From: Paramoeba atlantica
Lineage: Eukaryota; Protista; Discosea
Direction of reading: 5' to 3'
Length of the DNA stretch: 64,000 nt
Assembly: GCA_977017575.1 (NCBI GenBank)
Contig: CDRNVI010000012.1
Span: 682,001 to 746,000 of the forward strand
In this document: piece by piece, positions 5,431 to 64,000 of the stretch
Position numbering within the stretch: the first letter of the stretch is position 1
Layout: each line of letters starts with the position of its first letter
Position numbers and translations under genes: made by a program
The notes under the pieces: generated by a model
The model's input: only the letters and a program-made list of their open reading frames with translations
The model's database searches: none
What the model was told of the DNA's origin: nothing

Positions 5431-5909
5431 AAACCACGAAATGCGGCCACCTACCAGGGCAAGCGATCACTGAGCTGTATGCAGTGGGGAAGGTATTGGG
5501 GGGAAATTTCCACTTGAAAAATAAGTTGCTCGAAAGTAATATGAGGAAATTTAAGAATGAATATAGATAAATACTTAACTAACTCTATGGAGTTAGTGTA
5601 GAGTGAGTGAGTGAGTGAGTGTGACGCAGTTCAACTTTCGAAAGCATTTACCCGGCTCCAAGCCCTGTTGAAAGACTTTAGCCTCGTAGTATCAACGCAC
5701 AAATGCTTGTGGTTTGGAGGGATGGGAAAAGTACCTATGCCTCAAGAGTTATGCGATGCAGAGGTAAGAAATGCGGAACACACATTGAAGACTTTAGGCG
5801 CATTCATTGGGGAGGACTCTAAGATCAGTGAGCAACTTCTTACTTCTCTCCAGAAACACAACGACATTTTCCGTCGTCTGAAACTCATGGGGTTAAACAA
5901 TACTTCTGC

Positions 5910-6352
5910 GAATTTTTTTTTTCTTTTTTTTTTTAAATTTTCTTTTTTTGCAATTAATAAGGGGGGGAGAAGTATGAATCGCGGCATTGCCTCTATATTT
6001 TGACCCAGTAGACGAACCAAGTAGGTCCATTGGGGGGGGGGGTATACGAGTTGAAAACAAACAATCAAATTAGCAATTCTTTTTCTGTCCACAGATGTAC
6101 CTTTTTTCTCAGCCCAAAACTAGCAATTTAGTCTCCCCTAAGTATATACTACAAACAAGAAAAACAGTAAAAATTAAAACAAGCAATCCATGCCCAATCC
6201 ATTCGCGCGTTCCGGACCGGATCTTTCGACCTCTCCACGGCCTGACTTGTGAACCCTTCCCTTGTTATATGGGAGGGCGCAGGCGCGGGCCTGTGTCGAC
6301 AGCGACACGGTCGCGAAACAGGATGCTGGCCGACGGGGAGGAGATTCACTTC
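5910..6352 (-). mobile_element. 5'-truncated copy of the CRE element 3' UTR with poly(A)
   Basis: Near-identical to 57895-58300, the 3' UTR of ORF 58456..62301; T-run at 5910-5949 is the poly(A) on the minus strand. Confidence 0.85.
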
Positions 6353-6379
6353 CTCTTTTTTTTTTTTTTTTTTTGCTTA

Positions 6380-6740
6380 GTACTTTTTTTTTTTTTTTTT
6401 GACTTTATATATGTATGTACGGTATGACTTTCTCACTTACTTTCCTACTTGCTCAACTTCTTTCCCTAACTTCCCCCCATTTTGAAAACGAGCAAAATAT
6501 AAAACTAGTAAATGCATGCTTTCCCATCTTACCCACTTCCCCTTACGAATCTTTCCAGCTTTCCAGGGAGGGTAAGGTCTCCCTCTGCTAGGAGGGGCAG
6601 ACTTTCCCCTAACCATTCGCGCGTTCCGGACCGGGTCTTTCGACCTCTCCCAGCTTGCCTTGTTAACCCTTCTCTTGTTGTACGAGAGAGCGCAAGCAAT
6701 GGGCCTGTGCCGACAATTTTTTTTTTTTTTTTTTTTTTAA
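6380..6740 (-). mobile_element. Diverged variant copy of the CRE 3' UTR module
   Basis: Contains CCATTCGCGCGTTCCGGACCGGGTCTTTCGACCTCTCC at about 6613-6650 and a pyrimidine-rich tract like 57590-57660. Confidence 0.65.
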
Positions 6741-6762
6741 ACAAAAAGGGGGTATTAAGCAA

Positions 6763-7613
6763 TTTTTTTTTTTTTTATTCTGTAATACGATCTATAACTT
6801 TTCTCTCTCCGTATCCCCCTAACGGGGATTCTGACTTTCTTCACTCACTTTTCAAATCGCGAGGAATTGGGTGGCCCGAATGTCGCTGCTGGTTGTCATC
6901 CGTTGAAGTCGTGGCGCAGAAAACCTCACGAGCGAATTCACAAATGGTCCGAGCAGAAAGAAATTTTAGAGGCTCAAGAACTATCTGCAAATCCACTGCC
7001 GAGAGATGCGGTCCGGTACATCGAGAATACACCGATTTTCGTTTCCTGAGCAGAAAAGGATTTTTGGCGCTCGAAAGAAACGCAAACATGATGTTAACCC
7101 AACGTCCCATACGCAAACTCTGCGCAGCAGCTTTACGAATTGTACCTGTCGTCACGCACGTCGACTTGTCCCTCGGCACTTCGACATCCGTTGAAATCAT
7201 AGCGCAAAGAACCCCGCAAAGAATGATTTGGCACATGGTCCGAGCAGAAAGAGATTTTAAAGGCTCAAGAACTATTTGCGACACATCCGTTGCCGAGATA
7301 TGCGAACCTGCCCACCGAGAATACACCAACGCATTCTGTTTCCTGAGCAGAAAAGGACTTTTGGCGCTCGAAAAAAACATAAACTTGATGTCATTCCAAT
7401 GACCGATCCACACAAATTGTGCAACAACTCCATGGATTTCGTCGAACAATTCCCACGTTGACGTGTCCGAAGGCACTCTACTTCCTCGAAATCCTCCACG
7501 CACTCCGATCGTCGCTTGCGGCGCCCCAGCGCCCAGGTACATAAAAGTGAAGGTTGTCAGAATAAGAAAAAGAAAATCAACAAGGTACAGAAACTGTATC
7601 TTTATCGTTAAAG
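6763..7613 (-). other. Processed retrocopy of an SL-trans-spliced, polyadenylated RNA with about 295-bp internal repeats (ORF 7542->6841, 233 aa, unknown function)
   Basis: SL at 7613->7578, ATG at 7542, stop at 6841, poly(A) at 6776->6763; four GAGC-N17-GCTC motifs. Confidence 0.75.
7578..7613 (-). other. Spliced-leader exon copy (36 nt)
   Basis: CTTTAACGATAAAGATACAGTTTCTGTACCTTGTTG, not followed by a GT intron. Confidence 0.88.
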
Positions 7614-8970
7614 AAATTGTTGTCAAAATGCGTTAACGTCCGACAAAGATATCAAATGCGGGTGCACCATCCCGATGCTTCGGAGGCATTGACAGAACGT
7701 TTTGATAAAGAGGTGGAAGACGTTCTACAATCCTGGTTCGGATCACTCACAAAGGAGCAAATAACGCAAATCAGGCTACCGGTGAAGAAAGGCGGGTTAG
7801 GTTTAACAGCGTGCCTTCCAACGAGACATGCCGCTTTTGAATCTTCATGGTTTTCGGTTTTTGAGCGCCCAAAAAATCTTTCAGCTCGGACTGAACAACG
7901 TGAAGTAAACGCAAGCGACAGCGCCCACAGCGACAAGGACAAAAACGTGCCATTCGACGAACACACAGTAGCGGCAAAACTACATACGCAGGCGTGGGAA
8001 TCTTTAACATCATCGACAGCGAATAGTGCCTCCATCCTGAAAGCGGTAAGTTACACGGGTAATGCAGAATGGGTTATGTCCAATGCAAAATTTGTGCCCT
8101 CGCATTTGTTCTCGCTTGCAATGATGCCGAGATTGGGTATTGCTCATCCGAGTCTACCTAAGCAATTGCTCTGCCCTGGTTGCAAAATGCTACTAGAATC
8201 GCAAACAATTTTAACACACATCCCCGGGTGTTCGAAGTGCCCAGGCTTAAACGCAACTACAAAACATAATTCGCTAGTCAATTTTCTTTACGAGCTCTGT
8301 TTGAAGGCAGGCATTCCATGCGAAAAAGAACCGCGTAATTTCTCGACATATGCGTGCACGCAGTGTAACCAGAAAGTGGACTCCGATTACCGGCGGACGC
8401 ATGAAAAGGTATGCGGTGGTCGTTCTTTTCGAAGATCAGGACCTGACCTTGTCGTTTTTTGGAATACAGGGGAAATTTTTTATGATTTCACCGTAATTCA
8501 TGAATTAGCGCCATCGAACCTAGGTACAAACTGTGCAAAGCTGTTTCGTGATGCCATCAAACGAAGGCATGACACTTACGTCCGACCCGGCACAATTCCT
8601 GAGGACATGTTCAGATGCATTCCAATGCTGTCAGGGGGGGCGCTTCACCACAACACGAAGTCCCTTCTGAGTGCTCTAGCAGATGCGTGCTGTCTCCCCC
8701 GGAAGCAAGTACACCTCGAATTTCAGCTCCACCTGCAAGAGTTAAATGGGGCCGTTGTGCATTCACAGCTGAGGTCTTTTCTGGAGAAGGATAAGGGTGC
8801 CGCAGAGTTGGGAATTTAGAGTTGGAGATCCATGGTCAAAAGAGAATCCGAACTTCTAATCGATATTAGAAGCTAAGTCAGACTGCATAATTTACAAAAA
8901 GGAAAACATATGATCTACTCAGTGGGTATTAAACATATTATTATAAGAGTTTTCCAAGCGCAAGAAAATA

Positions 8971-9090
8971 CTTAACAAAAGAAAGGGTCTTAACAAAAGA
9001 AAGGGTCTTAACAAAAGAAAGGGTCTTAACAAAAGAAAGGGTCTTAACAAAAGAAAGGGTCTTAACAAAAGAAAGGGTCTTAACAAAAGA
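8971..9090. repeat. 18-bp minisatellite (CTTAACAAAAGAAAGGGT)6+
   Basis: Perfect tandem units between a REL 3' UTR and an SL-capped REL element. Confidence 0.95.
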
Positions 9091-9127: not shown

Positions 9128-9163
9128 CTTTAACGATAAAGATACAGTTTCTGTACCTTGTTG
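9128..9163 (+). other. Spliced-leader exon copy at the 5' end of REL-A
   Basis: Identical 36-mer, 22 nt upstream of ATG 9186 (MGVTTRAKAKE). Confidence 0.9.
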
Positions 9164-26400: not shown

Positions 26401-29400
26401 AGAGCCGTCTTCCCCATCAGATGAGCCACGTCAGTTTTTTGAGTGCAACACTCCCGAAACTCCCATGAAAAAAACGAACCAACGTGATCAGCTTCTCTCT
26501 CAGTTGGGGTCTCCATCAAGTCCCAAAATCGATGCGGAATTACCCGAGCGGGAGCCAAATGCAACGAAGTCACAGAACGAGAAAAATTCAGCGATCATGT
26601 TTATCGGAATAGACCCAAGCACAGAGGAGAATAAATCCTTTGACCTGATGAAGAATGTAACGCCCGAGTCACAATTTCCGGCCTCGCCGGATGAGATTTG
26701 GACGCATTCGAAGCAAATCAAACCGGGCGCAATGTGTACAGTGGCCTGGACATTTAACAAACAAGGTGCGCTTAACATCTCAATAGGCAAAGTCACTCGA
26801 ACACATAGTAAGCGTGGAGGATTTGGTAAGTTATCTTTTTTTTTTTTTTTTTTGTGGCTCCAGCTTCATGCTCTTCCAAAAGTTCATGTACAATGGACTC
26901 ACAAAGACGCGTTTATTTTTTTTTAGTCGATCAATGATTTAGTCTTTTTTTTTACGACTTTAACGTCTTGTTGTAGTATACAATGGCAGTATACAATGTT
27001 GCTGTATACTCAAAATAATAGTTTCACGTGTTTTCCGTTCCTTTATTTATTCACATGTTACTCAAAAAAGCAAAACAGTAATAGCCGAATGCTGAAAGCA
27101 GCGAAAAAGTGACGACTCAAAGCAGCGAAACGGTGATAACCCAAAGCAGCGAAACAGTAACAACCAAGAGCTGAAAGCTGCGGAACAATAATCACCAAGC
27201 AGCAAAAAGAAAATAACCAAAGGCTGAAACCTAACCAAGCAGCGAAACAGTAATCACCAAAGGCTGAAAGCAACGAAACATTATTAATATCTATCTCGTA
27301 TCGGGGCGTTGTTGGTCACAAAGTTGGGGAACAATTTTCCGGGGTTTTACCTCCACAAGAGGACGTACGGATCTATAAACTAGCGTGGCATCAAGCGCCG
27401 CCAGCGATCGATACTACTGTGCAAAGGGATGCGTTTCTGGAGAATCATCAGATGAACTTTCCAGAAAAAGCCAAAGATGATTCATCAGTGGATTTGTTAC
27501 CAATACCCACGCTACGTTCAATAAGCCCTGACCTCGCTCCGTGTGTTGTCGTGGTGCTGAGGAACATCGTCCAGGAGTATATAAATTCCGATCACACGCA
27601 AAGAACAAAAATATGGCACCGTTTGCTATCAGCCATTAAGTTATCCCTAGCGACTGTTCGAGAAAACAGTGGAAAAAGGCGAAGACGGCGCCCGTTACGG
27701 GAGCCGTCTGACGGTGAACGAAAAGAGGAGACACTGAGCGATACACGGGCCATCAAACGAGCGACAAGGCTAGTATTGGAAGGATGTACTTCCAAGGCAG
27801 CCAAGGTCTTGGATCAGACCTTTACACCAAAGCAACTAACGGATGAAGAGACCCTTGACAAGCTTGCCGCATTACATCCGCAAAGACAATACGAAGTTTC
27901 TTTGCCGGAGGATGCGCCGATAATTAGCGGAATAATGACGGAGGAGCTACGGAAAGCTGGGAAGCGACTCGCAAAAGGCGTAAACCCTGGCCCAACTGGA
28001 ATGACAGACGGGATTGTGCAACTCATGCTCGATGATGAGATCTCATGCACTAATCTTGCCCATATGATATCGGATCTAATCAACGGATTCGTGGATCACA
28101 GCGTTTTGTTTCGATTAAACCGAGCACGGCTCGTAGCCATTCCTAAATCCAACGGAGGAGTCAGACCAGTGGCAATGGGCGAGATATTTATGAAGCTTGC
28201 CGGCGTTATATTGCTCCAGCGCTACGAACACACTTTGGGCCCTCTTTTTGCACCACTGCAACACGGCGTTTCGTCAAAGGCAGGATGTGAAAAAATCGTT
28301 CATAGACTGCATGAGCGTCTTAAGTCTGGACACGTCATTCTTTCCATTGACGCCAAAAACGCCTTCAACTCCCCGAATAGGGCGGATATTGCCAAACACG
28401 TATTTGCTTGTGGTACACTACGCCCGTTTCAACGGATCTTTCACGCTGAATACGGCCAACCCTCAGAGCTACTGTATTACGGATCCGATGGAACGCTATT
28501 CGGAGTCATTCCCAGCACATGTGGTTTGCGGCAAGGTTCCCCGCTGGCATCTCTATACTACTGCGCCTTCCTGCAGCCACTATTGGAGATTCTGAAACAA
28601 GAGTTTCCCGACATCGAAATATATGCGTTTATTGATGACGTGAACATGGCTTCGAAAAACCCACAATCATTGGCCAAAGCATTTGTAAGGCTCCAAGAAA
28701 TGGTGAATGCTCACAACATTGAACTTGCTCCTGGAAAATGCGTGTGGTTCGGTGGACAGGAAAAAATCCCGATTCCAGAACAGCTTGCAAATGAAGGGGT
28801 CAAGGCTGCGTACGGTTCTATAAAGATCCTTGGGGCACACCTTGGAGAAGACGAATCTGTAAAGTCGGGTTTGTTTCAGCAGCTTGTCAGGAATACCGAA
28901 GCCTTTCGCCGATTAAAACTTATGGGCGCCAACAATGTCTCACTTTTGCTACTTTCCAAAAGCATGAATGTGAGGCATCAATACGCCATAAGAGTGCACG
29001 AGCCAACGTTAACCGACGCGGTCTCTCTCAGTTTCGACAACAACGCCGAAAAAGTGCTGCACCAGTGGTTGGGAGAAATGACCAAAGAGCAAATCGAATT
29101 GGCTCGGCTGCCGCTAAAGAAAGGAGGCCTCGGTCTGACATCATGTCATAGTATTCGTGCGGCGTCATACGAAACTTCTCGTTACCTAGCTCTAGAGCGC
29201 AAAAACTCAATTTCTGCTCGGGCGGGCAATGTGAGTAACGTATCCGCTATCATGGATAATGGAATGAGTCAAACAGCAGTGGTCGCCCCAATTGATGAAG
29301 TAACAACAGCCGCGCAATTGCACCAGAAAGCATACGAGGCTTTAAAGGATCACGATCCCAAGCTAGCCACAATATTAAATGCCACCACACGGAAAGGAAG

Positions 29401-31197
29401 TTATGACTGGTTACAGTCTAATGCTAAATTTGTACCCACGCGTGCATTTCAGATTGCAATCATGACACGCCTTGGGATGCCTCATCCTCGACTCCCGAAA
29501 TCGCTGCTGTGCCCCGGCTGTCGTATGTTACTCGACAACAAAACAGCTTTGCAGCACATCCCCGGATGTGTCCAATGTACAGGGCTTAATGCCACAGTAA
29601 AGCACAATCGGCTGGTTAAGTATATCTTCGATTTGGCGCAAAAGGCCGGTATACAATGCGAGAAAGAACCGCGATCTTTTTCGACTTGGCAATGCGGAAT
29701 TTGCAAGAATAAAGTGTTTCCAAGCAACAAAATGATTCATGACAAAACATGTGCCGGACGTCAGCTGTTTCGCTCAGGGCCGGATTTGGTGATATATTGG
29801 TCAACCGGGGAAATATTTTATGATCTAACCGTGGTGCACGAGCTATCGAACTCCAATCAAGTGAAATCTTGTTCCCAGCTTCTTACAGATGCAATCAAGC
29901 GGAAACGGGATACATATGTGACATCCGGAAAAATTCCCGACTTCGCATTTCAGTGCATCCCAGTGCTGTCCTGCGGCTCTCTTCATCAAAATACGAGATC
30001 TCTGTTGCATGTCCTATCCGACGCGGCACTCTTAAATCGTCGAGCAACTGAAATGGAGTTCAAGCTCCTACTTCAGGAACTTAATGGGACGGAAGTGTAC
30101 GCCCAGTTGCGGAACCACTTATCCCCGGAAGGCAGCAGCAGGTACAGCATTTGAGCCAAATGTATCAACATAGTTTCGCTTTTCAATGCCTATATTAAGA
30201 GTTTACGAAAAGAATTTTAGGAAGTGTGCAGTGGTTAACGTGTTTCATGCACGCACCAACCAGTGCAATCTTGAATACATCTTTAGCATATACTGCACTT
30301 TTACGCATAAACTTTACGTGTAATGTACTTTTGTTTCGTTATTTCATATAATATTTCTTAGAAGAAGATTCTTAGGACGATAGAGCGGAGCGGGTGAATG
30401 CCTTGTTTAAGGATCATGGTCTTCCACCTGAGCAGCGGTACACATTCAACGGTATAACATATCACCATCGTGAGGGGAAGGTATCACTGGGACCAAAATT
30501 GACCCGCAGATTAGAGCATGATGAATTTATTGGTGCTACGTATTCATCGTTAGAGGCTGGTGTCGGACGTCTGGTTTTTGCCTCAGGTGTCATGGGTGTG
30601 AATCTACCTCAATATCATCTGGAGTTAAAAATTGTGCGCCGGAGAATCAATAGGTTAAATCGAGAACCCGAACTGCTCGATCAAATAGTGCCCTTGCCAA
30701 CGCCAGTACGGGTTGCGCTAACTGAGTGGCGCGATACCCTTTTATATCGATCGCCGGTGGTTCCGCTTCCGCATCCGGAAACAGTTCCGCATCGGCACAT
30801 TTTATGTACAGACGCCTCCTCGAAGGGTTGGGGGGCAGTTTTATATCTGGATTACGGACAAATGTTGTGCACTGGATCTCAATGGCCCCCTGATTTCGAG
30901 TATGAAGTTAACCGCGCGGAAGCGCGGGCTGTTCGCTTGGCCTTTCAAAAATATGGTCATCATTTCAACTCGGATACATGCGTCGACCTGTATGTTGACA
31001 ATACTTCGTGCGTTGCTGCGATAAATAGAAAAATGCCACGTTCAGACGGTATAACTTCTGAGCTACGCCGGTTGTTAGATTTCTTAAAGCGTAAAGGTGT
31101 CGCCGTTCAGGCACAGTATATTTGTTCGAACGAAAATCCGGCCGATCCTTATAGTAGACTCTGCACGGTAGACTCGGATAAAGCAGATGTCATGTAG
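23475..31197 (+). CDS. pol: YR2 pol in two pieces (23475-25387 and 30384-31197)
   Basis: In-frame rejoin FVDDR|AERVNALFKD across the 9-bp duplication GGACGATAG; RT motif YIDG, RNase H motifs CTDAS and ENPADPYSR. Confidence 0.88.
23566..24564 (+). CDS. Tyrosine recombinase of YR2
   Basis: CWKAASRWSE, HSAKRGA, HQSLESLLRY (R...H-x-x-R...H...Y). Confidence 0.9.
   Translation: MECNLVVKDVQNLSGRCVQSESIYGGTLSLQQACPARFKLVKLLMRVSTLTPEIRNALDAMGEMWSTTTWQARARLWERLTMFCQWRGIEVTPIHAVAFIASLPIRIQAKLTYARSLASILNLAGQVVNPLRFYVKSLMAEGATEPLRQMTPLTLTDLNQLWLHLPDSERHTLLLCWKAASRWSETAVLTRDKFHEISPTRIVIWWGRHTKTSRFNPYRPSMYTVVEGPGTSRLANYISRLGGYQPMSRTTVSEADRQIRRILGEGFGTHSAKRGAITQLFAEVAKGGTSLEEVQRLAKHQSLESLLRYNADPATTALALGTQNATSRLNIM
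25388..30374 (+). mobile_element. REL-C: CRE-like element inserted in YR2 pol with a 9-bp TSD
   Basis: TSD GGACGATAG at 25379-25387 and 30375-30383; ORFs 25397..26836 and 27293..30154 rejoin (GFGKLS|ISYRG); full RT and REL motifs. Confidence 0.9.
26837..27292 (-). mobile_element. 5'-truncated polyadenylated 3' UTR copy with degenerate AAAGCAGCGAAACAGTAATCACC-type repeats
   Basis: Reverse complement of about 41985-42422; T-run at the left end; short TATCT duplication at the flanks. Confidence 0.75.
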
Positions 31198-33649: not shown

Positions 33650-33703
33650 AAGGTACAGAAACTGTATCTTTAACGATAAAGATACAGTTTCTGTACCTTG
33701 TTG
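33650..33703 (+). other. SL exon (33668-33703) with a fold-back inverted duplication (23-bp perfect stem, ACGA loop)
   Basis: AAGGTACAGAAACTGTATCTTTA-ACGA-TAAAGATACAGTTTCTGTACCTT. Confidence 0.9.
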
Positions 33704-36420: not shown

Positions 36421-39400
36421 TCAGAGGCCCAGTTCCTGAGATGTCTCCTGCGTTAGATAATTTTTCAGCTGGGAAAATACCACTGATCCGTTCAACTCTT
36501 GAAGGTGCAACGAAAATTCGTTCAAAGTTTTCCCTCTTTCAAGCCCACAGCAGTCCGCTAGCGTATGCAGAAGGGTCTTGAGCCCTTGATGCATGGCGCC
36601 GCCGGAGAGGACTGGGATGCATTTAAAACGTTCCTGCGGAATCATCCCCGATGCGACGTACGTATTATGTTTCCGTGCGATCGCATCCCTCATTAGGGCC
36701 CCACTCCCTCGCCGCAAGTTCGACGGCGCCAATTCATGGATTACAGTGAGGTCGTAGAAGACTTCACCGGACGCCCAATATATGACTATATCAGGTCCGG
36801 ACCGGTGAAGACTAGCATTTCGGCAGATCTGTTGGTGCTCACGTTTGCGCCAATGCGGGAACGACTCCCCGCAAGTGGAGCATTTGTAGGTCGTAAATTG
36901 TCGTGGCTCCCGCTCGCATGGTACCCCAGCCTTCATGCACAGATCGTAAATTCTACGCACCAGCGCATCATGTTTCGTCGTGGCATTGTTTCCAGAGCAC
37001 TGAACACATCCCGCTATGTGCGAGAGGGCTGACGAAGACTCAAGAATGACTCGACACCCCGGGCATTGTAAGTTTCCTGGAAGCCGCGGGTGACTGAGAC
37101 CAAGACGAGGTATAAGTGCCAAGGTGTAAAATTTGGAAGATACTAGTTTTGCGTTCGACTGTATCCACGATGAATTCCCTTTCTCGCTTGCGGCGCGCAG
37201 TAACGACGCGACATTCGGGTCTTTCGACAGCGATTCCTTAATTGATTTGTTAAGCTGTGCTTCGGTGACGAATTCGTCGTTAGGGGGGCGGATTGAATCT
37301 TCATTTCCTACCGGCGATGGGGATGTAAGGCCTGTCGCTCGAACTGAAAGTGAATTTAGTCGTTCAAAAGCGTTGTGCCTCGACGCCTCATACGCCGATT
37401 TTCGTAGAAGATCCGTGGGCGTCAGCCCTAAACCTCCACTCTTTACCGGAAGTCGTGCCCACGCGATCTGTTTCGGATTCATTTCTCCGAACCAGGTGGT
37501 CAGAACTTCTTGCACCTCTTTGTCGAAGGATTTCGCCATCTCAAAGGTTTCCTCTGGCCGATGGACTCGTATGTGGTACCTGTGTCTCACATTAACGCAT
37601 CGCGACAAGAGGAGCATCGAAATGTTATTCGCACCCATGGTTTTCAGCCGCCGGAAAAATGCCCGGTGTTTTTCAAGCTTGTTGAGAAGTAATTCGCTGA
37701 CTCTGGTTGATCCCCCTAAATAGGCTCCTAGAACTTTGACGGCTTTTTCGGCTATCTGAACACCTTCGTTGACTAGTTTCTCGGGTAGTTTGACGTTGTT
37801 TAATCCATCAAACCAAACACATTTTTGCGGCGCAAGTCGGATCGATTTACTTTCCAGGAGCTCCTTGAGACGGACGTATGCAGAGGCGATGAGATCCACA
37901 TCGTGTGAGGAGATGTTGATGTCATCGACATAAGCGTATATGTTAAGCGATGGGAATTCCTGCGCGATCGTCTCAAGAATCGGTTGAAGAAATGTACAGA
38001 AATACAACGTTGATAACGGCGACCCCTGACGCACTCCAGCCGAACTCTCGACTTTGGAGAATAATTCCCCGTTTTTGCCATAGAAGAGGAGCTCTGATGG
38101 TTCCCCATATTCAGCAACAAAAAGTCGCTGAAAGGGTCGAAGTGCGCTAAACGCGAAAATCGCTTTCGCAATGTCATCGCGTGAAGGGCTGTTAAAGGCG
38201 TTTTTCATGTCCAGAGAGAGAATGGCGTGTCCTTCCATGTACCGACGATTGAGCTCGTGCACGATAGTTTCACAGCCCGCTTGGCTCATAACCCCGTGTT
38301 GCATCGGAAGAAACAGCTTCGCGAATTTGTGTTCATGTCGAAGTATTAGGACCAGCCCCGCCAACTTCAACAGAACCTCCCCCATCGCCACAGGCCTAAC
38401 GGATTTTGATGTCTTGGGAAGTGCCACGAGACGCGCTCTCCTCAATCTACGCATGACTTCTTTGGACAGCATCCCGTTGACAAGATCACAGATCATATGA
38501 CACAGACTGGAACAACAGATCTCATCATCCAATAACAACCGAACAATGGCTTCCGTTGTACCCGAAGGTCCGGGAGCCGATCCCTTTGCTAGTCTTTTCC
38601 CTGCATCACGTAGCTCTTGCGGTGGGAGGCACGCAAACTTCGGGGCGTCTGTCGGAAGCGCGAATGAAATAGGCAACGAGGGATGCAATTTTCGCAATTG
38701 GTCCAATTTTCCTTCATCCGTCATCGTTGTAATTGCAGTTTCCTGATCTAATACTCGCGTTCCCTTCTTCGTTGCTCCTTCCAAGAGCAGTCTCGTTGCT
38801 TTCTTTATAGCCCGCAAATCACTCGCCTTTTGCTCCGCTTCACTGTTCAGAGTTGTCGTCTCCTGAATTTCAACTGGACGGCGACGACGCTTCTTTCCAA
38901 TGATGTGGCGCACTGTGGCTAAAGAGTGTTTCATTGCCGACAGAGTTCTGTTCCAAATTTGATTCCGTTGCTCGTACGAGGAACTCGCGTAGTCCCTCAT
39001 GATATCCCGATAGATCGCGACAACACAAGGTACAAACTCGGAACTAACGGACCGTAAGGTGGGCATTGGGTCGAGGTCCAAATCAGCTTCGGTGTGATCA
39101 AGATCATGTCTGTCTTTGTCTTCTGTGGAATTCGTTTCCCCCGCGTTTCTCCTTGGCTCATCAAGCCAGCGTATCGAATGTTTATCGAATGAATTCGCAC
39201 GTTGGGATTCGGCGGAATAAACCCCTCAAATTTGGTTCCAGATTTGTGCCCTTCCACGCCTTCATATGATATGGCTATTCTACCGGCTCCCGCCCGTTAT
39301 TTCATCATCATAAAGAGAAAAAGAAAAAGAAAAAGAAAATCTTAATGGATAGTTCTTGGATAGTTGGGTTGCTGTTCGTCTGTTGTAGGTGTAGATTTCT

Positions 39401-39879: not shown

Positions 39880-39992
39880 TTTGTTAAGACCCTTTCTTTT
39901 GTTAAGACCCTTTCTTTTGTTAAGACCTTTCTTTTTATGAGAACCTTTCTTTTTATGAGAACCTTTCTTTTTATGAGAACCTTTCTTTTTAT
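39880..39992. repeat. 18-bp minisatellite grading from TTAAGACCCTTTCTTTTG to ATGAGAACCTTTCTTTTT
   Basis: About six tandem units visible. Confidence 0.9.
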
Positions 39993-48848: not shown

Positions 48849-49169
48849 ACCTCGAGAACTACTAACCGTGCCGTGTAGCGTAATTCCGAGAGTAATTCCG
48901 ATAATATATTTGTTAAGACCCTTTGAGTCTATAAATCAGCTCGACTGCCGATATCGTTGGCGAGAGGCACGGAGGAAACGGCGGTGCTGTCAACAGGGGA
49001 AGCCGAGTAAATTGGAAATAAGTTAAGGCTGCAAGTTGCAGCTATAAGGTTAAAAATTTTTGCACAAATGATGGCGAATATATCTAAATATAGTTACCTT
49101 CGTCAAAAAAAAAAAGATATTTTATTTATAAAAGGATTTTCTGCAAAAAAAAAAAAAAAAAAAAAATAG

Positions 49170-49200
49170 ACGATAAAGATACAGTTTCTGTACCTTGTTG
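49170..49200 (+). other. 5'-truncated SL exon copy (31 nt)
   Basis: ACGATAAAGATACAGTTTCTGTACCTTGTTG directly after an A-run, not followed by GT. Confidence 0.85.
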
Positions 49201-49789: not shown

Positions 49790-49861
49790 ACTCAATACTA
49801 AAAAAAATAGAGGCAATGCCGCGATTCATACTTCTCCCCCCTTATTAATTGCAAAAAAAAA
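49790..49861 (+). mobile_element. Extreme 3' end of the CRE 3' UTR with poly(A)
   Basis: TAGAGGCAATGCCGCGATTCATACTTCTCCCCCCTTATTAATTGC(A)n, reverse complement of 57895-57940. Confidence 0.85.
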
Positions 49862-50258
49862 CAAAAGAAAGGGTCTTAACAAAAGAAAGGGTCTTAACAA
49901 AAGAAAGGGTCTTAACAAAAGAAAGGGTCTTAACAAAAGAAAGGGTCTTAACAAAAGAAAGGGTCTTAACAAAAGAAAGGGTCTTAACAAAAGAAAGGGT
50001 CTTAACAAAAGAAAGGGTCTTAACAAAAGAAAGGGTCTTAACAAAAGAAAGGGTCTTAACAAAAGAAAGGGTCTTAACAAAAGAAAGGGTCTTAACAAAA
50101 GAAAGGGTCTTAACAAAAGAAAGGGTCTTAACAAAAGAAAGGGTCTTAACAAAAGAAAGGGTCTTAACAAAAGAAAGGGTCTTAACAAAAGAAAGGGTCT
50201 TAACAAAAGAAAGGGTCTTAACAAAAGAAAGGGTCTTAACAAAAGAAAGGGTCTTAAC
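49860..50258. repeat. 18-bp minisatellite (CTTAACAAAAGAAAGGGT), about 22 perfect units
   Basis: Directly visible; ORFs 49826..50242, 49845..50330 and 49849..50283 are artefacts. Confidence 0.97.
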
Positions 50259-55701: not shown

Positions 55702-57150
55702 TCAGAGTCTGAGGCCTCCTAGCCACTTTTCGCCCTTGATGTGATTTCGCAGCTGCGACACGATTGTGTATGCTGCGAACTTTTCGTTTTCCAATTGGAA
55801 GGCTTCCCGTATCACTTTGGGGTCTAAGTCAGCGCGTTTCGAGAGGGCTTTAATCAGCTCCTTCGTATTTTCGTGCAGCATTCCACAATCAGTTAGCGCT
55901 ATGCATCGAAAATAGTTTGGATCCACTCCTTTCTCCACTATGTATTTTCGATGTTTTCTTTCTATGGCACTCTCTAGAAGGGCTTTGCTGGACTGTTTCT
56001 GGTAGCTGCTGCAGAGTGTGTGTACGACTGTGACATCGTAGAGGACTTCTCCAATATCTGGCCACATTATGGCCAGATCGGGGCCCGAACGTATACGACG
56101 AGCTCTGCATGGGTGTCTCTCCGCTGCTTCTGGTGAAATAGAGCACTTACACTTCGTGCAAAAGAACGATGAATACAGACGCGGTTCCAACGCACATGGG
56201 AGTCCAGCTTTTCCACATAGATTTGAAAGGTATCGAACAATGTGTGAGTGTTTTCTCGTACAGTTCATCCCAGCACATTTCGAGCAACCTGCAACGTGTG
56301 GAAATATTCCGGAGGGCGATTCACTGACCCCGCATCCAGGACAGGAGATATTACTCGAAGAAGAGAGACTGACGGCCAGCCTCATCTTGAGCGTTTGCTG
56401 GAAGAGGTACGGGTTTACGTAGTTGTTGGTCGAGAGGAGATGAAAATTTGCTTCCTTCGAGCGCTTCATAACTCCACTGAAACGTGGTTTTGTTTTCAGC
56501 TCTGCCGCAAGTTTTTCGTGCTCGTCATTGACTAGTTTCTTCAGTGCCGTGCGTACTCCTTGTGTCCCTGTGGTCTTGTTGCCTTTTTGTTGCTTCTCAG
56601 AGTTTTCTATCGGAGCTTCATATGGGTTGAAATGCTCATCAATAGATTGACGGGAAGCTTCAAAAAGATAGCGATGTTTCAGAACTGTGGAGGTTATTCC
56701 CAATCCTCCCATTTTGCACGGCAAAGAGGCAAGTGCTAAGGCATCTTCGTCAGCATCGCACCACTTTCTTAAGACTTGTTGGATCTCTTTGTCAAAAATC
56801 TGAGCTAGAAGGAATGATGCGCCCGGTTTATGTACTCGCAGGTGATAATCGTGGCGCGGTATCGTGCAACGCTTTAAAATTGCGAGGGAAAGATTACTTG
56901 GTCCCATGCGGCTGAGTCTTCGAAACAGACAGTTATGCTTCTCCAATTTTTCGAGAAGTTTGCGTTCTACGGCTTTGTTGTTGCCTAGGTATCCTCCGAG
57001 CACTTTGATTGTATCTACGCAGTCTTGAACCCCAAGTTCCCGAAGAGAGGAATCTTTGATGTGTAATGCCCTGGATCCTTGAAAAATTTCGCATTTGCGG
57101 TAGTTTATTTCTAAGTTCAGATCGCTCGTAAGCTCTTTGAAATGCAAGAA
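55702..57150 (-). pseudogene. 5'-truncated diverged REL subfamily element
   Basis: KVLGGYLG, GGLGI, CPGC, RSGPDLAIMW..LYDVTVVH. Confidence 0.85.
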
Positions 57151-57230
57151 TCTTAACAAAAGAAAGGGTCTTAACAAAAGAAAGGGTCTTAACAAAAGAA
57201 AGGGTCTAACAAAAGAAAAGGTCTTAAAAA
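57150..57230. repeat. 18-bp minisatellite, about four units (degenerate at the right end)
   Basis: CTTAACAAAAGAAAGGGT repeats. Confidence 0.9.
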
Positions 57231-57244
57231 GAACCTGAGCCAAG

Positions 57245-57872
57245 TTTTTTTTTTTTTTTTTTTTTTGCAATTAATAAGGGGGGAGAAGTATGAATCGCGG
57301 CATTGCCTCTATATTTTGACCCAGTAGACGAACCAAGTACATAGTAGGTCCATTAGGGGGGTATATGAATTTAAAACAAGCAATCAAATTGGCAATTCTT
57401 TTTATTTCCACAGAAGTATATTTTCTTTTTCTTTTTTTTCTCAGCCCAAAACTAGCAATTCAATCTCCCCTAAGTATATACGACAAACAAGGCACAGTAA
57501 AAATAAAAACGAGCAATCCAGACCCAATCCATTCGCGCGTTCCGTTTTTTTTTTTTTTTTTTTTTTTTTTCTCCTCTTTCTCACCTCTTGACATACTTTT
57601 CCCACCTTTCTCCCTACTTTCCTGCTTTCCCCTACCCAACTTTTCAACTTTTCAGGGGGGGGGGGGTAAGGTCTCCCTCAGCTTCGCCTCACCCGGCCTG
57701 CAGGCGGCTCCTCAACCATTCGCGCGTTCCGGACCGGGTCTTTCGACCTCTCCACGGCCTGACTTGTGGACCCTTCCCTTGTTATACGGGAGGGCGCAGG
57801 CGCGGGCCTGTGTCGACAGCGACACGGTCGCGAAACAGGATGCTGGCCGACGGGGAGGAGATTCACTACCCG
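57245..57872 (-). mobile_element. Truncated or rearranged copy of the CRE 3' UTR with poly(A)
   Basis: Shares the terminal ...TTATTAATTGC(A)n and the GC-rich module with 57895-58300. Confidence 0.8.
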
Positions 57873-58455
57873 TGTTTTTTTTTTTTTTTTTTTTGCAATT
57901 AATAAGGGGGGAGAAGTATGAATCGCGGCATTGCCTCTATATTTTGACCCAGTAGACGAACCAAGTAGGTCCATTGGGGGGGGGGGGGGGGGTATACGAA
58001 TTGAAAACAAACAATCAAATTAGCAATTCTTTTTCTGTCCACAGATGTACCTTTTTTCTCAGCCCAAAACTAGCAATTTAGTCTCCCCTAAGTATATACT
58101 ACAAACAAGAAAAACAGTAAAAATTAAAACAAGCAATCCATGCCCAATCCATTCGCGCGTTCCGGACCGGGTCTTTCGACCTCTCCACGGCCTGACTTGT
58201 GAACCCTTCCCTTGTTATATGGGAGGGCGCAGGCGCGGGCCTGTGTCGACAGCGACACGGTCACGAAACAGGATGCTGGCCGACGGGGAGGAGATTCACT
58301 GCCCGTGTACTACCTCACTTGGGGTACCTAGCCCTCGCGGGCTAGGCGTGAGTATAGACTCTGTCGACCCGACCAGCATCCGGGATCACATTAGAGAACC
58401 TCACTCATGAGAGCAAGGCTTGAGAATAGGTGGGTAAGACACAGTGGGTAGGGGC

Positions 58456-61400
58456 TTATGCCCCTACCAAAGACCCCGCTGGATCCGCCACGGGGATGCG
58501 TGACACCATCATCCTGGCCTGCGAACGCATGAGCGTAACATTCAGCTCCGTCAAGAGTTCATTTCGCGCTTGGCTCCGTGACAGAAACCCCTTGGACGCA
58601 TTCGCCCGTTGCGTTCCGATATCCCGGAGTAACGCTAGGGCACTTTCACTCCAGGACCCAAAGGACTCTACAACCATTGCTGTGAAGAGATGCCCGGCTT
58701 CGTCTGCTTCTTGTCGCTGTCGCGCCTTGGTCTCGGCATAGTGCGCGGCAAAAGACCCTGGGGTCACCCAGCTAGCATTACGGACTGAGTCCAAATACTT
58801 TAATTGCTGGGCGTGGGTGACCGCAAAGTCCAATACCATGCCTTGCGCCAGAGTCCCTTTTGCCAAGGATGCAGTGGGCAGGAAGACATCCGCAGGCCTC
58901 GTGAGAGCTCCTCCGGGGCCTCGGTTTCCGAGACTCATCTCGCGCCGTGGTCCCAATTGGGCCTTGGAACAGAAAGATGTGAATTGTTGTGCCAGGGAGT
59001 TGTGGCGGGCGATGATGCCATGCCCATTTTTACAGAGCAAGGCGTGTTCACCGTTCTTGAGGAGAGGGAGGGCACAGCCTTCGGCGGGACAAGGCCTATC
59101 CTCTGGGAAAACATCCACCCCCAACCACCAACGTGATAGCGTCCGGAACTCCGTGGGGGTGAAAGCCAACCCTCTTTGCTTTGAGGGTGTCACAAAAACC
59201 CAGTTTCCGGCCCCTTTACCTGACTGAGAAACCCAGCGTGCCCTTGTTCGGGCGTCTGCCCTTGCGTAAGCAGCATAGAACTCCTGTTCAGCGATTGCGT
59301 GGCTCAGGTGTTTTTGTCGTGGTACGATGGTTTCTGGTTCTGTGGTGTCGGGTAAAAGGGGGTGGCGGAGGGAATGGGAAAGTTTTCTTTTCGCCGGGCG
59401 TGACTGGGCGTCCCGTGCCTCGTTGTGGTAGTCTGGTGAGCTTGGCTTGAGGATACGTCCAGTATACAGATCGACCAGGACAGTCCCAACTTTTTGATTT
59501 ATTTCGCGTGCCGAATCAAGAAACCCTTCAGCTTCGGCTGCATCCCACTTATCCTTGTCGGAGGCAAAAGCCACAGAAGAAACGTATGCGGCCGAGTGGT
59601 GAAGCAACGATGAGCGAAGGCCGAATCCCCCGTAACGTTTGGGCCGTTGTAGTTGGTCAAGGGCGGGAAGATCAAGAGGAAAAAGTGCGTGTTCCACAGC
59701 GCGCATGAGGTGAAAATCCAGCTGACGACAGAGTTCTCCGAGGCCTTGGGGAGGGGTGGTACGCAGTGCGTATACCATTTGGCAGAATCCGGCGCACTGC
59801 CTTATAAGGGCGAGGGCCACTTGCGGGTCTTCTATCAGGGAAATGGCTTCCAACGTATCGCGGGCTGGCTCGATCGCGTGTGTCCTTAGGAAATTCGCAC
59901 AGTGTTCTGGAGAGCCCACCGGACTCCCAAGGATATCAAAGTTTCCGTCATACCTTATTTTGTCGCTAGGAATGTCGGGGAAAAAAGCAGAGGTGTGGGC
60001 AGACGCAGGGGGGGTGATGATTTCACATTTTGAGAGGTTCAGAAAGAGTCCCCACTGAGTTCCTACTTCCGCGAGAACGTCTAGTGCCTTCCGGACTTCC
60101 TGTGGTTCGCCAATGATCACACCGTCATCGAGATACCATAACTGTGTTTGGAGCTTTGTACGCGATGCGATTTCCTCCGTTGCCCCCGACAAAACCAAAG
60201 AGAACAGGAGGGGACCTAGGGGATCACCTTGCTGCACGCCCTCGGCCGAAGGAATTAAATTGTCACCAAATGTTAGACAGCTGTGGTTGGCGTAACACCA
60301 CTCAACCCATGGGGACAACTCGGGGAAATGCTTTCGCGTGAGGAAGATAAACACCGGCCTACTGACATTGTTAAAGGCGTTGCGGAGATCCACTTTACAG
60401 AAGGTTATATTTTCGTTTTCCATGTTGTTGAGCATCAACCTACGACAATTGTGAATGACTCGCTCTGCTCCGGCGGGCGCCGCGACGCCGTACTGTTTGC
60501 GGCCGAAGAAGGAACTTGCCTTTTCCTTTAAAGAAAGACACGCTGCCTTGCTGACCAAACGTCGTAGCGTTTCCCCCGCAGCAATAGGCCTCACGTCTTC
60601 TTCGTCCTTTTCGAGCGCGCAGAGTCGTGCACCTGCAAAGAAGGGGTGTACTTCATCCGGGCCTCTGCCTGCTAAAAGGTGGTTCACAAAGGACGTGAGC
60701 GCCAGGAGTGGATCCATGTACTGGTCAACATGCTCTTGCAGTGCTGCTTGTAGGTGTTCGGGTCGAAGACCCATAGTTCCGGCGGAGGAGCCGCGGTGAA
60801 AACTATTCACGGCCTTTTTTACTTCCGATTCGTCCAGCTGTAAAAAGTCTTCTTTCAATGGTGGCAAAGGGCAGGAGATAGGATTCCCGTGGGAGCTAGG
60901 ATGTTTCCTTTGCAACTTTCGCAATGTTTCTTCATTGTGCGGCGCGAGGGGAGCTGCCGTCAGGGCTGCCATTCCTCTGGAAAATTCCCCGTCACGGACC
61001 AGAAGTTCTGCTCGTACTATAGCCTTTTCCACGTCGTTCTCGTTGCTCGTGTTCTTCGGGCGTTTTCTCTCGTGATCGGACACAGCTTGAGACCAAAGGG
61101 TCGAGTATTGTCCTTCCATCCAAAGCTCCATTCTTTTGAGAATGTACGACGAGTAAGTGATATGGGCTTTGCGGCCTCCTCGGAACGGGGCTGGAAGGAC
61201 GCACTTTGGAAGTAAGGCAAGGAGCGTCCACGCCCTCACTGAATTTTCGCGCACCGCTGTGGATAGGGCGTAAGTCAATATCTGGGCCCACATGCGTCGG
61301 CATCGGTGTGGGACGTCTTTGCAGGTGTTTATCGGTGTCGTGCATATTTGCTCCAGAGAGGGTAGCTCGGCCGTGCCCTGAACATCGTAGATGGCTTCTC

Positions 61401-62250
61401 CTAGGCATTCCGAGGGTTGCGAGGGTGGAGGTGATTGCACGGCGTGCCCTTTGCATTGGTTCACGTGCGCCGTCTTTTTGTTGAGAGCGTAATGTCGACC
61501 GCATGCGGCGCACAGAAAGCGGCCCTCTTTCTCCCACCAAACACTGGAAATTGCTTCCCCATGCCTGTAGGCCACGTGGTGGTAATAGTACTGCCACTGC
61601 CCTCCGTGGGCTTGCGTCTTCCAGGTACACCCATCTGCAGGGCACTCTCGTTGCGGCGGATCTTCCTCAGAAATGGGCGGGGTCGCAGGAACCTGGTCAC
61701 TTGCCAGGGTCGGGGCCTGAGGAGTGGTCACTCGTGATACGTTTTCCGTAGGTTCGAGAACGTGGGGGCCCCGCGTGGTCTTGTAGTCCGCGGTTTCCGC
61801 TTTTCTTGTATTGGCTTTCTCTCGGGCCTTCTGAGGTTTCGTAGCGCCCCGAAGCTGACCCTTAGAACTCGGAGGTGTGGCGGAAGCTCTTCGACGAGGG
61901 AATTTCTTAGCCATGGAATTATTATCAAGCTGTGTGGTATCAACTTCGAGATTCGATCTGATGAGAACACGTGAGTGGTTCGTTTCTTCGTCGCCTCCAT
62001 TTTCGCATCCTGTATCAGGCGTTTGTTGTTGAGTTAAGATGGAGGCGGCATTCGCGCACCAGTCATTAGGGACATTCGCAGGAATCGGAGTTGTATATAG
62101 CAGATCATTATACGTGCTTGGATGCTTGATGAGGTGTGCGTTTCCAGCAAATTGGTCCCAAGATCCAGGTAGATGTATGGATTCCTCTTGTAGGAATGTA
62201 TCGTCGTCCATGAGGGGAAGTGTCTCTTCGTGTGGGCTGATACCAGACAT
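58456..62250 (-). CDS. CRE-type polyprotein: two N-terminal Zn fingers, RT, Zn knuckle, REL endonuclease (1264 aa)
   Basis: CPADGC..HVAYRH and CAAC..H..C; RPIAAGETLRRL, GVQQGDPLGPLLF, WYLDD; CPAEGC..H..C, RHN, RPADV..LDFAVTH; no stops. Confidence 0.92.
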   Translation of the reverse strand: MSGISPHEETLPLMDDDTFLQEESIHLPGSWDQFAGNAHLIKHPSTYNDLLYTTPIPANVPNDWCANAASILTQQQTPDTGCENGGDEETNHSRVLIRSNLEVDTTQLDNNSMAKKFPRRRASATPPSSKGQLRGATKPQKAREKANTRKAETADYKTTRGPHVLEPTENVSRVTTPQAPTLASDQVPATPPISEEDPPQRECPADGCTWKTQAHGGQWQYYYHHVAYRHGEAISSVWWEKEGRFLCAACGRHYALNKKTAHVNQCKGHAVQSPPPSQPSECLGEAIYDVQGTAELPSLEQICTTPINTCKDVPHRCRRMWAQILTYALSTAVRENSVRAWTLLALLPKCVLPAPFRGGRKAHITYSSYILKRMELWMEGQYSTLWSQAVSDHERKRPKNTSNENDVEKAIVRAELLVRDGEFSRGMAALTAAPLAPHNEETLRKLQRKHPSSHGNPISCPLPPLKEDFLQLDESEVKKAVNSFHRGSSAGTMGLRPEHLQAALQEHVDQYMDPLLALTSFVNHLLAGRGPDEVHPFFAGARLCALEKDEEDVRPIAAGETLRRLVSKAACLSLKEKASSFFGRKQYGVAAPAGAERVIHNCRRLMLNNMENENITFCKVDLRNAFNNVSRPVFIFLTRKHFPELSPWVEWCYANHSCLTFGDNLIPSAEGVQQGDPLGPLLFSLVLSGATEEIASRTKLQTQLWYLDDGVIIGEPQEVRKALDVLAEVGTQWGLFLNLSKCEIITPPASAHTSAFFPDIPSDKIRYDGNFDILGSPVGSPEHCANFLRTHAIEPARDTLEAISLIEDPQVALALIRQCAGFCQMVYALRTTPPQGLGELCRQLDFHLMRAVEHALFPLDLPALDQLQRPKRYGGFGLRSSLLHHSAAYVSSVAFASDKDKWDAAEAEGFLDSAREINQKVGTVLVDLYTGRILKPSSPDYHNEARDAQSRPAKRKLSHSLRHPLLPDTTEPETIVPRQKHLSHAIAEQEFYAAYARADARTRARWVSQSGKGAGNWVFVTPSKQRGLAFTPTEFRTLSRWWLGVDVFPEDRPCPAEGCALPLLKNGEHALLCKNGHGIIARHNSLAQQFTSFCSKAQLGPRREMSLGNRGPGGALTRPADVFLPTASLAKGTLAQGMVLDFAVTHAQQLKYLDSVRNASWVTPGSFAAHYAETKARQRQEADEAGHLFTAMVVESFGSWSESALALLRDIGTQRANASKGFLSRSQARNELLTELNVTLMRSQARMMVSRIPVADPAGSLVGA

Positions 62251-62295
62251 TGAGAGTAACCCGTACCTCGGAAAGAGATGAAATAGAAAATAATT

Positions 62296-62331
62296 CAACA
62301 AGGTACAGAAACTGTATCTTTATCGTTAAAG
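62296..62331 (-). other. Spliced-leader exon copy
   Basis: Identical 36-mer, 45 nt upstream of the ATG. Confidence 0.9.
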
Positions 62332-62332
62332 T

Positions 62333-64000
62333 GTTTTTTTTTTTTTTTTTTAGCCCGTGGAGCGCATATATTATATACGCGCCGATTACTATCAAATGTG
62401 AGACATGTTCACCTTCCCCCCTTCTCTCAATTTTCAAAGAGAAACTATCCCGAAAATGAAATCTATATATTTTTATAAGCTGACTCAGCTTATAGTGATA
62501 TTGTGTTTAGAACTTATATACTATATTCTTGAGTTTGCGTGCAGCCGTCTAAGTATTTCTTTAGCTGCGCATAAATCCCTAATCCATTAAGCTCCTGAAT
62601 CGTCAGCTTCATTTCGAGTTCGACCTGTTTCCTGTTTAGCATGGCCGCGTCTGCTAGCGAGTGTACCAAGTTCTGCGTATTGCGGTGCAAAGCGCCTCCT
62701 GCCAGTACGGGTAAACATTGAAATGAGTCTTCACGAATTAAGTTCGTACGTACATATGTGTTGGACTTTCGCTGCAGCGCGTCATTCATGAGCTGTGTGC
62801 ATTTCTTTCCACGATTAGACATTGAGAGTTCGTGAATAACTGTCAGATCATAGAAGACCGCACCCGTGTTCCAATAGATCACGAGATCGGGGCCAGACCG
62901 ACAAAGTTTTTTTCCTGCACAAGTCTTCTGATGTACCAACTGGTTTTCCGGACTGATTGTGGATCGGCAAGCGATGCACTTCCACGTAGAAAAGTTTCTA
63001 GGTTCCGTTTCACATGGGATGCCTGCTTTCACGCATAGACGATGTAAAAATCCGACAAGTGAGTTATGTTTCACGGTCGTATTTATACCTGAACATTGAG
63101 CACAGCCTGGGATATGGGTGAGGGCGTTTCGGTTATTGAGGAGAATACCGCACCCTGGACACAATAGACTGGTAGGTAGATCTGGGTGTTGGGCATTTAG
63201 TCGTGGCATAATCGCGAGTTTGAAGAGATGGGAAGGGATGTACTTCGCGTTGGAAAGGATCCAGTCGCTGTTTCCTTTGAAGGATGTGGCTTGTAGAATG
63301 GGCTTAATGTCGGGATCCGTTTGCAACTCTTTCAATACTTCGACATGATGAATGCTGGTGGAAGTTTTTTTGTCCACTGGTATGACTTTCATTGTCGAGT
63401 TCTTAGGAATAGACGGGTGTGATGGCACCGCGTTGTCGATCCGAGCTGAAAAAGAGTTTCGGCGCTCAAGAACCGAGTAGCGGGATGCCACATATGCCGT
63501 CTCCCTAAGGGGACTGCTCGCTGTCAAACCCATTCCTCCCTTCTTAACGGGTAATCGTACAATTTTCATTTGATCAGGAGAGAGTGGACCAATCCAAGTC
63601 TCTACCACATTTTCAACCTCTTGATCGAATTGTGATGATGCTTTCTCTGTTGTTTCGGGCGGGTGAACACGAATCAGGTATTGTTGACGAACATTGGCAC
63701 ATTTTGCTAAAAGAATCATCGATATATTATTGATGCCCATTCGTTTTAGCCGCCGAAAAGCTGTGACCTGCTTCTCTAGTTGACGCAAAAGTCGTTCACT
63801 TATTGTGTTGTTTTCTCCAATATACGCTCCGAGTACTTTGACCGCTTCGTCCTCCGACTTTACACCTTGGGTGCTCAGCGAATTCGGTATGGAATTTCCG
63901 GATTTTCCTCTGAACCAAACGCATTTTGCCTCGGCTAGTTTCACCTGTTTTTCTTCTAGGAGACCTTGGAGCCTAAAGAATGCTTTCTCCAGTTCGGTTG
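62333..64000 (-). mobile_element. REL-family element running off the window (ORF 62514..63944), with 3' UTR and poly(A)
   Basis: KVLGAYIG, GGMGL, RSGPDLVIYW..YDLTVIHEL; T-run at 62334-62351; terminal 50 nt shared with 40567-40615. Confidence 0.88.

Follow-up and report, generated by a model that had tools for sequence, protein, structure and literature searches.

Results

An SL-headed element at the 5' end of a cDNA chain

The window, the whole 64,000-nucleotide stretch of Paramoeba atlantica DNA analyzed here, holds copies of two retrotransposon families. Family H, the host of the insertion and the donor of the hairpin described below, is the 911-aa type (e.g., 27419-30154), and family X has a 1281-aa ORF. 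Both have a reverse transcriptase (RT) domain and, recognized by inspection, a CCHC knuckle at the C-terminal end together with a nuclease motif of the PD...D type; their proteins are 24% identical. CPGC...H...C and GPDLV...YD.TV motifs are visible in the translations. Family H gives a Pfam match to RVT_1 and none to Exo_endo_phos; that is, no N-terminal apurinic-endonuclease (APE) domain was found. A PDB sequence search for the nuclease domain returned LINE-1 RT domains only, not R2, so the restriction-like nuclease assignment is one of motif inspection. With these features, family H appears from its sequence to be a restriction-like-endonuclease (REL) non-LTR retrotransposon of the R2/CRE/NeSL type. 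Protein searches with family H gave no matches outside one ENA assembly.

The ORF of one H copy is interrupted by a 1.7-kb insert at 5913-7613 (Table 1). The host protein aligns to intact relatives without a break across 5912|7614 (...NNTSAN|LLSKC...), with at most 3 bp duplicated. Since the host REL ORF is contiguous over this junction, the insert lies antisense within the RT ORF, as a first-pass annotation of this DNA had proposed. The insert is a chain in which every piece has the same orientation (minus strand) and its own terminal A run, and the element headed by a spliced leader (SL) is only its 5' link. Further along, 6522-6715 of piece 2 matches 57611-57818 and 6607-6715 matches 58143-58251, while 5927-6353 of piece 4 shares 96.5% identity with 57875-58303, the stretch that follows the 3' end of the 1281-aa family X ORF (58456-62301 (-)) without a gap. 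There is one target site for the whole window chain, as in a template-jump chimera; possibly the chain arose instead by serial insertion into A tails.

Table 1. Features of the interrupted family-H ORF and of the inserted chain, in window coordinates
Feature	Position	Strand	Details
Host family-H RT ORF, left of insertion	5611-5912	+	blastx to intact H copies ends here
Chain piece 4	5913-6355	-	6 extra nt, family X 3' UTR, A-rich tail adjoining host DNA
Chain piece 3	6356-6383	-	9-nt snippet + A19
Chain piece 2	6384-6716	-	5'-truncated variant family X 3' UTR + A17
Composite 3' end of element	6717-6776	-	A14 6763-6776, 24-nt linker 6739-6762, A22 6717-6738
Element body	6777-7577	-	801 nt; ATG at 7542, stop 6841-6843
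3' repeat unit	6887-7141	-	hairpins B1 + A1
Hairpin A1	6944-6984	-	motif 6951-6975; 36.2 bits, E 5.2e-8; 28/36 identical to host hairpin
Hairpin B1	7041-7081	-	motif 7048-7072; 44.9 bits, E 1.3e-10; all 7 lower-stem pairs
5' repeat unit	7175-7438	-	~294-bp period; hairpins B2 + A2
Hairpin A2	7235-7275	-	motif 7242-7266; 38.7 bits, E 9e-9; 27/36 identical to host hairpin
Hairpin B2	7338-7378	-	motif 7345-7369; 37.9 bits, E 1.6e-8; all 7 lower-stem pairs
Spliced leader (SL)	7578-7613	-	36 nt; 5' end of retrocopy
Host family-H ORF, right of insertion	7614-8819	+	thumb, own hairpin 7854-7894, CCHC zinc knuckle, restriction-like endonuclease motif

The 36-nt string at the head of the element occurs in full also at 9128, 33668 and 62331 (-) of the 64-kb window and in a shorter form at 49170, with different sequence downstream each time and a chance expectation of 0 matches. 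In contigs from an RNA run it is joined to several unrelated sequences with an early ATG downstream. Because it heads different sequences both in the window and in the RNA contigs, we identify it as the spliced leader of the organism, whose leader presumably resembles the kinetoplastid/diplonemid type.

The element body contains two internal repeats of ~294 bp with 77% identity, between which there are three indels, all of 3 nt. The repeats of about 295 bp with four GAGC-N17-GCTC motifs that the first-pass annotation described are thus present, with the motifs at the coordinates it gave. Its layout of SL, about 800 nt and poly(A) also stands, and its 3' end at 6763 needs to be moved: an ending of A14, linker and about 20 A is common to three copies of the element (the window copy and those at loci L004 and L007, described below), so A14 is internal to the family RNA and the window copy ends at 6717. 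This 3' end does not resemble any H or X sequence. Rfam searches found no RNA family at gathering thresholds in the window and none that was real at E up to 1 in 5900-7700; the element has no tRNA, 7SL or 5S match in Rfam and no pol III promoter head of such a kind.

Snippets of 6-24 nt lie between consecutive A runs in the window (5913-6400, 6717-6776) and at other loci of the family (L004:4770-4865; L007:5150-5660). Several of them start with TTG or TTGT, as at the end of the leader, and they may be abortive template switches. Head-to-tail chaining is seen elsewhere in the window too, where a poly(A) abuts the next leader (62332-62350 (-) and 49150-49170 (+)); at 62331, an H copy and then a family X element follow each other in head-to-tail order.

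A covarying hairpin in the coding region of family H

Folding 16 H copies together with the four element copies gives a consensus hairpin with a 7-bp lower stem, a 2-nt 5' bulge, a 4-bp GAGC:GCTC upper stem and a 17-nt loop in which certain A and U/C positions are conserved. On this model the proportion of paired cells is 91.4%, where shuffles reach 76% and controls with slid partners 28-40%, and 39 cells show double changes where 13 are expected, a count that none of 500 shuffles reached. The H copies alone give the same picture, with 90.3% of cells paired and double changes in 27, where 9.5 would be expected. A shorter structure, in which GAGC:GCTC was combined with three adjacent outer pairs and an inner A-U helix, paired 81% of cells against 82% in shuffles; it was rejected as no better than shuffles, and the bulged 11-bp helix was therefore adopted.

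In 15 non-redundant H copies from the window and the fetched loci, the motif sits at the same codons, at the end of the thumb block and immediately before a variable linker. Codon use there is strikingly narrow: glutamate is GAG in 14 of 15 copies, serine TCA in 12 of 13 and alanine GCT in 14 of 14, and the codon that follows the motif always begins with C, although it may encode R, H, Q or P. Other conserved residue columns in H use the full range of synonymous codons. In one H copy (37341-37365 (-)) the upper stem reads GAAC...GTTC; the two sides have changed in a compensated way, and the encoded alanine has become valine. G-U pairs are frequent, which assigns the structure to the RNA of sense orientation. 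Taken singly, the hairpins have little thermodynamic stability (-5 to -13 kcal/mol; z-scores from +0.3 to -2.5), so the case for the hairpin is one of covariation and synonymous-site conservation. GAGC-N17-GCTC sites number 13 in the window, against 0.66 expected.

The element carries four members of the hairpin family

A covariance model built from the 16 family-H copies only was used to search 109 kb on both strands. The hairpins of the element score 36-45 bits (E 1e-10 to 5e-8), within the span of 35-55 bits covered by true H members, and beyond H and element hairpins there was no further match below E 0.1 in the 109 kb. The family-H carriers in this sequence amount to 17 sites (16 of them in the model), each at the homologous coding position. 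All four element hairpins adopt the family geometry in single-sequence minimum-free-energy folds. They are of two types, A and B, each duplicated once, and in the lower stems of type B all seven pairs form with a sequence unlike that of any H copy. Comparison of the internal repeats shows 3 differences in the 82 nt of hairpin segments, and a divergence of 23% in the rest. The element hairpins are thus true structural and sequence members of the family-H hairpin.

Two sequence-level claims of the first-pass annotation were recomputed and hold: the ungapped identity of 28/36 to 7857-7892, and the placement of the four motifs in two reading frames (offsets of 97, 194 and 103 nt). Identity of at least 26/36 to the host motif is found in the window only in other family-H hairpins and in the two type-A copies. 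More extended homology was sought and rejected: for the body, tblastx against REL and other window sequence found the SL only, and nhmmer with a REL codon-alignment profile matched only the 40-47-nt hairpins.

At 7374 (+) the window has an A, where three read sets and all other family copies have a G; the A is probably a private variant or a consensus error. This base lies in the lower stem of hairpin B2, and a G there restores a C-G pair.

The element is a dispersed family

Further loci were sought by protein search with the 233-aa ORF, a route by which only loci with a called ORF are retrievable. The search returned one cluster of seven ORF fragments, to which an exhaustive search added two, all from one ENA assembly. 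They represent eight loci in all, the window locus and seven others, with different flanks. L001 is the window locus in a second assembly, with the same flank, a full SL and 99.6% identity; it is without window 6425-6920 (~500 bp, comprising the 3' end of the element and most of chain piece 2; compare L001:6623 onward), which is a deletion polymorphism or an assembly difference. L002-L007 are six further loci, 97.6-99.1% identical and with differing flanks; L008 is a seventh, a 5' fragment whose identity was not scored; and L009 and L007 are one copy. Two subfamilies can be told apart by variants held in common and by a 5' indel. Direct repeats of 8 bp flank L004 and of 10 bp flank L002 as target duplications; for the former, an uninterrupted homologue (empty site) was not found among the sequences compared.

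Additional copies with distinct flanks, which the first-pass annotation had looked to as a check, therefore exist, and its own counter-scenario, a single retrocopy whose motif is not reproduced elsewhere, is at odds with eight differently flanked loci. We had at first read the element as single-copy, from equal read depth over body and flank in three runs. This reading was dropped once the seven other loci were found in an independent assembly, as depth is not copy number. With regard to expression, a tiny RNA-labelled run covered the SL and left the element body uncovered.

The full SL is present at two loci, the window/L001 locus and L008, whose upstream flank is new. The six other copies (L002-L007) begin within the last 5-8 nt of the SL. 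A source locus with a splice acceptor was not found among the ORF-bearing loci, all eight of which carry the SL or its last 5-8 nt. The 5' ends are thus bimodal, and the six short ones start at the 3' foot of a palindrome in the leader, TACAG-TTT-CTGTA (window 7578-7585). Such truncated ends could come from an RT stop, or from fold-back priming followed by hairpin opening; a fold-back at 33650-33703 offers itself for comparison with these leader-foot ends.

Coding potential

A Pfam search found no domain in the 233-aa ORF, and the only matches to it in sets of 5.8 billion clustered proteins and of 1.84 billion representatives are copies of the family. The first-pass annotation had likewise proposed a non-autonomous element. 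Between the internal repeats, dN/dS is 0.82 and the differences fall almost evenly over the three codon positions (19/21/19), and of six other copies three have a disrupted frame. Only 0.3% of shuffles contain an open frame as long as the 244 codons found here (p about 0.003). With moderate confidence we regard the element RNA as non-coding; the rarity of so long a frame and the 3-nt indels between repeats leave some room for coding in the past.

On the other strand, an open frame of 296 codons (6512-7402 (+)) crosses the T runs, and at L006 gene calls fuse the same antisense frame to a host RT ORF. It is probably a by-product of stop-poor composition.

Copies are joined to three LINE families

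Copies of the element are joined to cDNA of three LINE families: X (window and L007), H (L005) and an APE-type LINE (L008). At L007 the element is followed by X-type 3' UTR pieces, with a tail variant and a join point that differ from those of the window, so the two joins are independent. At L005 the 5'-most ~290 nt of the element run co-oriented into a family-H sequence that begins at about RT residue 226, and at L008 the 5'-most ~185 nt adjoin the 5' end of the APE-type LINE, in whose ORF the matches to APE, RT and RNase H are weak. Simple nested insertion was considered for L005 and L006 and rejected, as the remainder of the element does not follow further downstream. Two copies are unjoined and end in poly(A) tails of their own. 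Family X is without the hairpin and yet supplies the 3'-terminal (priming) pieces in the window and at L007; with three LINE families involved, mobilization is not tied to family H.

The element encodes no RT or endonuclease, and it has dispersed copies, A-rich 3' ends and target duplications, all as expected of a retroposon. The hallmarks of a mature mRNA (a leader, poly(A) and no promoter) are there as well. A pol III promoter head and a 3' tail in common with a partner LINE are both missing, and the element is not a classical SINE. We conclude that it is a non-autonomous, SL-headed, trans-mobilized retroposon of ~0.9 kb belonging to a young family.

Both internal template-switch acceptors in the element lie just 5' of hairpins, 5 nt before A2 in one case (window 7281|7280; L005:1296-1585 joined to 1586) and ~15 nt before B2 in the other (window 7394|7393; L008:3013-3230). 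Rough chance would give switch sites this near to hairpins in ~1% of cases, a figure calculated post hoc for two cases only.

Discussion

How the element may be mobilized

The reading we favor, to which we give an even chance, is that the element is a non-autonomous retroposon copied by LINE RTs, and that its hairpins are a protein-binding signal for entering their complexes. The source RNA is trans-spliced to the SL, polyadenylated and structured, and is without an encoded enzyme. Resident LINE RTs may copy it in two ways. They could start on the poly(A) tail of the element, which would give stand-alone insertions with 8-10-bp target duplications, or an RT already on LINE RNA could jump to the element RNA, which would give head-to-tail chimeras. 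The window copy would be of the second kind, with priming at a nick in the H-family RT ORF on family X 3' UTR RNA, followed by at least three jumps of the RT, the last template being the SL RNA, copied to its capped end. A single event of target-primed reverse transcription is the simplest history for the window. The hairpin is a candidate protein-binding RNA signal of the H ribonucleoprotein, and its four copies may let the element enter retrotransposition complexes. The data show the RNA origin, the lack of coding capacity, several independent insertions, the chimeras, and the homology and covariation of the hairpins; we infer both that a protein binds the hairpin and that this promotes mobilization, and consider both plausible.

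A more specific version, which we hold only tentatively, is that the bulged hairpin is the signal by which the H ribonucleoprotein recognizes its own RNA, and that the element is a hyper-parasite that displays the signal fourfold. As the hairpin lies in the thumb-coding region, newly made H protein could seize its own message. The element would then have taken on the features of an mRNA, with a leader and a poly(A) tail in place of a pol III head or a 3' tail in common with the LINE. Hyper-parasitism on the H hairpin would be a partnership of LINE and non-autonomous element of an undescribed kind. The copying of element RNA by three LINE families weakens the idea that this partnership is exclusive to H.

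It is also conceivable, if doubtful, that the element is an abundant host RNA that is copied passively, and that its hairpins serve some other function at the RNA level, such as stability, localization or the binding of a shared host factor. Chimeras that involve three unrelated LINE families, and unjoined copies that end in the poly(A) of the element itself, are what passive copying would produce, and the WEIRD RNA of Magnaporthe behaves in this way (PMC2104539). A host function, however, would not explain why, outside the element, the 109 kb hold this hairpin in copies of family H alone, and the gene expected to give rise to such an RNA was not found among the ORF-bearing loci, each of the eight having SL remnants.

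We think it unlikely that the element is a decoy or defence RNA, made by the host or by a rival element, which would soak up the hairpin-binding protein of H or feed a small-RNA pathway directed against the best-conserved portion of H RNA. Multimerization of the signal in sense orientation would suit such a role, as would the far better preservation of the hairpin segments than of the remainder between the internal repeats. But this RNA spreads by retroposition, with at least eight loci and subfamilies, which is the behavior of a parasite, and it has no antisense or inverted layout from which double-stranded RNA could form. Such spread is better accounted for by a parasite, or by passive copying of an abundant RNA, than by a decoy.

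Improbable, too, is an origin of the retrocopy from a gene that encodes a two-repeat protein of 233 aa, in which the likeness to REL would reside in an LSART-like peptide. The 244-codon frame (p about 0.003) and the uniform 3-nt length of the three indels between repeats speak for a protein gene, and the type-A hairpins do read VLEPLK.LSART in the same frame as ERPKNLSART of REL; the type-B hairpins, in contrast, are in another frame, the dN/dS of 0.82 and the lack of a Pfam match and of relatives in 1.84 billion representatives count against a protein, and what is conserved in REL is synonymous sites and base pairs, not residues. Finally, it is very hard to credit that the element is the decayed remnant of an H-family ORF, or that its motif arose by chance, without a function of its own: the similarity is indeed short (40-47 nt per copy) but comes in four copies, of two types whose lower stems differ and are fully compensated, reaches E 1e-10 to 5e-8 under a model built without the element copies, and stands in a young, multi-copy family where flanking REL coding sequence is untraceable.

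Relation to known systems

Non-autonomous retroposons are known that borrow the 3' tail of a partner LINE or use a plain poly(A). In stringent LINE-SINE pairs, such as UnaL2/UnaSINE1 of eel, a common 3' stem-loop is recognized by the LINE RT. The element resembles these pairs in being a non-autonomous element with a structured RNA signal of an autonomous non-LTR element, but its module is internal, comes from a LINE ORF and is present fourfold, the 3' ends are not shared, and the head is an SL and not a pol III promoter.

Template-jump chimeras of LINEs with non-coding RNA are documented (PMC2104539). WEIRD-MGL and Mg-SINE of Magnaporthe grisea and U6-L1 of mammals are likewise non-coding RNAs that have repeatedly been fused head-to-tail to LINE 3' pieces, and RT template jumps, double and triple chimeras and a single flanking target site are features of the WEIRD-MGL type (PMC2104539). 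Unlike these, the element RNA is SL-capped, inserts alone with target duplications of its own, has four structured signals in common with a LINE coding region, and is found in a chain of at least four links with short snippets between the A runs.

Coding-region RNA of R2 is bound by the R2 protein (PMC2346776). This 5' coding-region RNA is, like the H hairpin, a structured RNA inside the ORF of a non-LTR element with a restriction-like endonuclease, and is proposed to direct the protein of its own element (PMC2346776); the H hairpin differs in being a bulged structure of 41 nt at the boundary of thumb and linker, for which binding is only a candidate function. The SL-tagged retrogenes of dinoflagellates (PMC6050394, PMC5585692) retain a 5' trans-spliced leader, as the element does, which is proof of an mRNA intermediate, but they copy ordinary protein-coding genes, whereas the element is an enzyme-less, apparently non-coding repeated family. 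NARTc, the partner of L1Tc in trypanosomatids (PMC5814959), is another LINE-dependent non-autonomous retroposon of a protist with SL trans-splicing; it is reported to be a truncated form of its LINE, whereas the element has only the 41-nt hairpin in common with H.

What sets the element family apart, then, is that it has only a covarying 41-nt hairpin in common with a LINE, internal to the RT ORF there and in four copies here. It may show one genomic parasite exploiting another. If the hairpin is a self-recognition signal, it would be a compact and testable case of cis-preference encoded in a coding region, and the element would show a parasite of a parasite subverting the cis-preference of a LINE; a short RNA tag of this kind might then direct cargo RNAs to a restriction-like-endonuclease RT. 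Whatever the role of the hairpin, these loci document template jumping in several steps, by three LINE families, in an organism with SL trans-splicing.

Tail sequences of families X and H

Variants of the X 3' UTR (6607-6715, 57700-57760 and 58143-58200 of the window; L007:4900-4975) have a core of ~38 nt in common, and the remainder of the tail differs among them. The core includes a GGTC-GAAA-GACC tetraloop hairpin, and read depth there is 40-80 times that of the flanks. It is likely the RT recognition element of family X. An 18-nt tandem repeat (~AAAGAAAGGGTCTTAACA) is found at 8966-9088, 49860-50258, 39880-39989 and 57140-57233 of the window; it occupies the place expected for the 3' tail of one H copy, and the stretch at 49860-50258 is an array of ~22 units.
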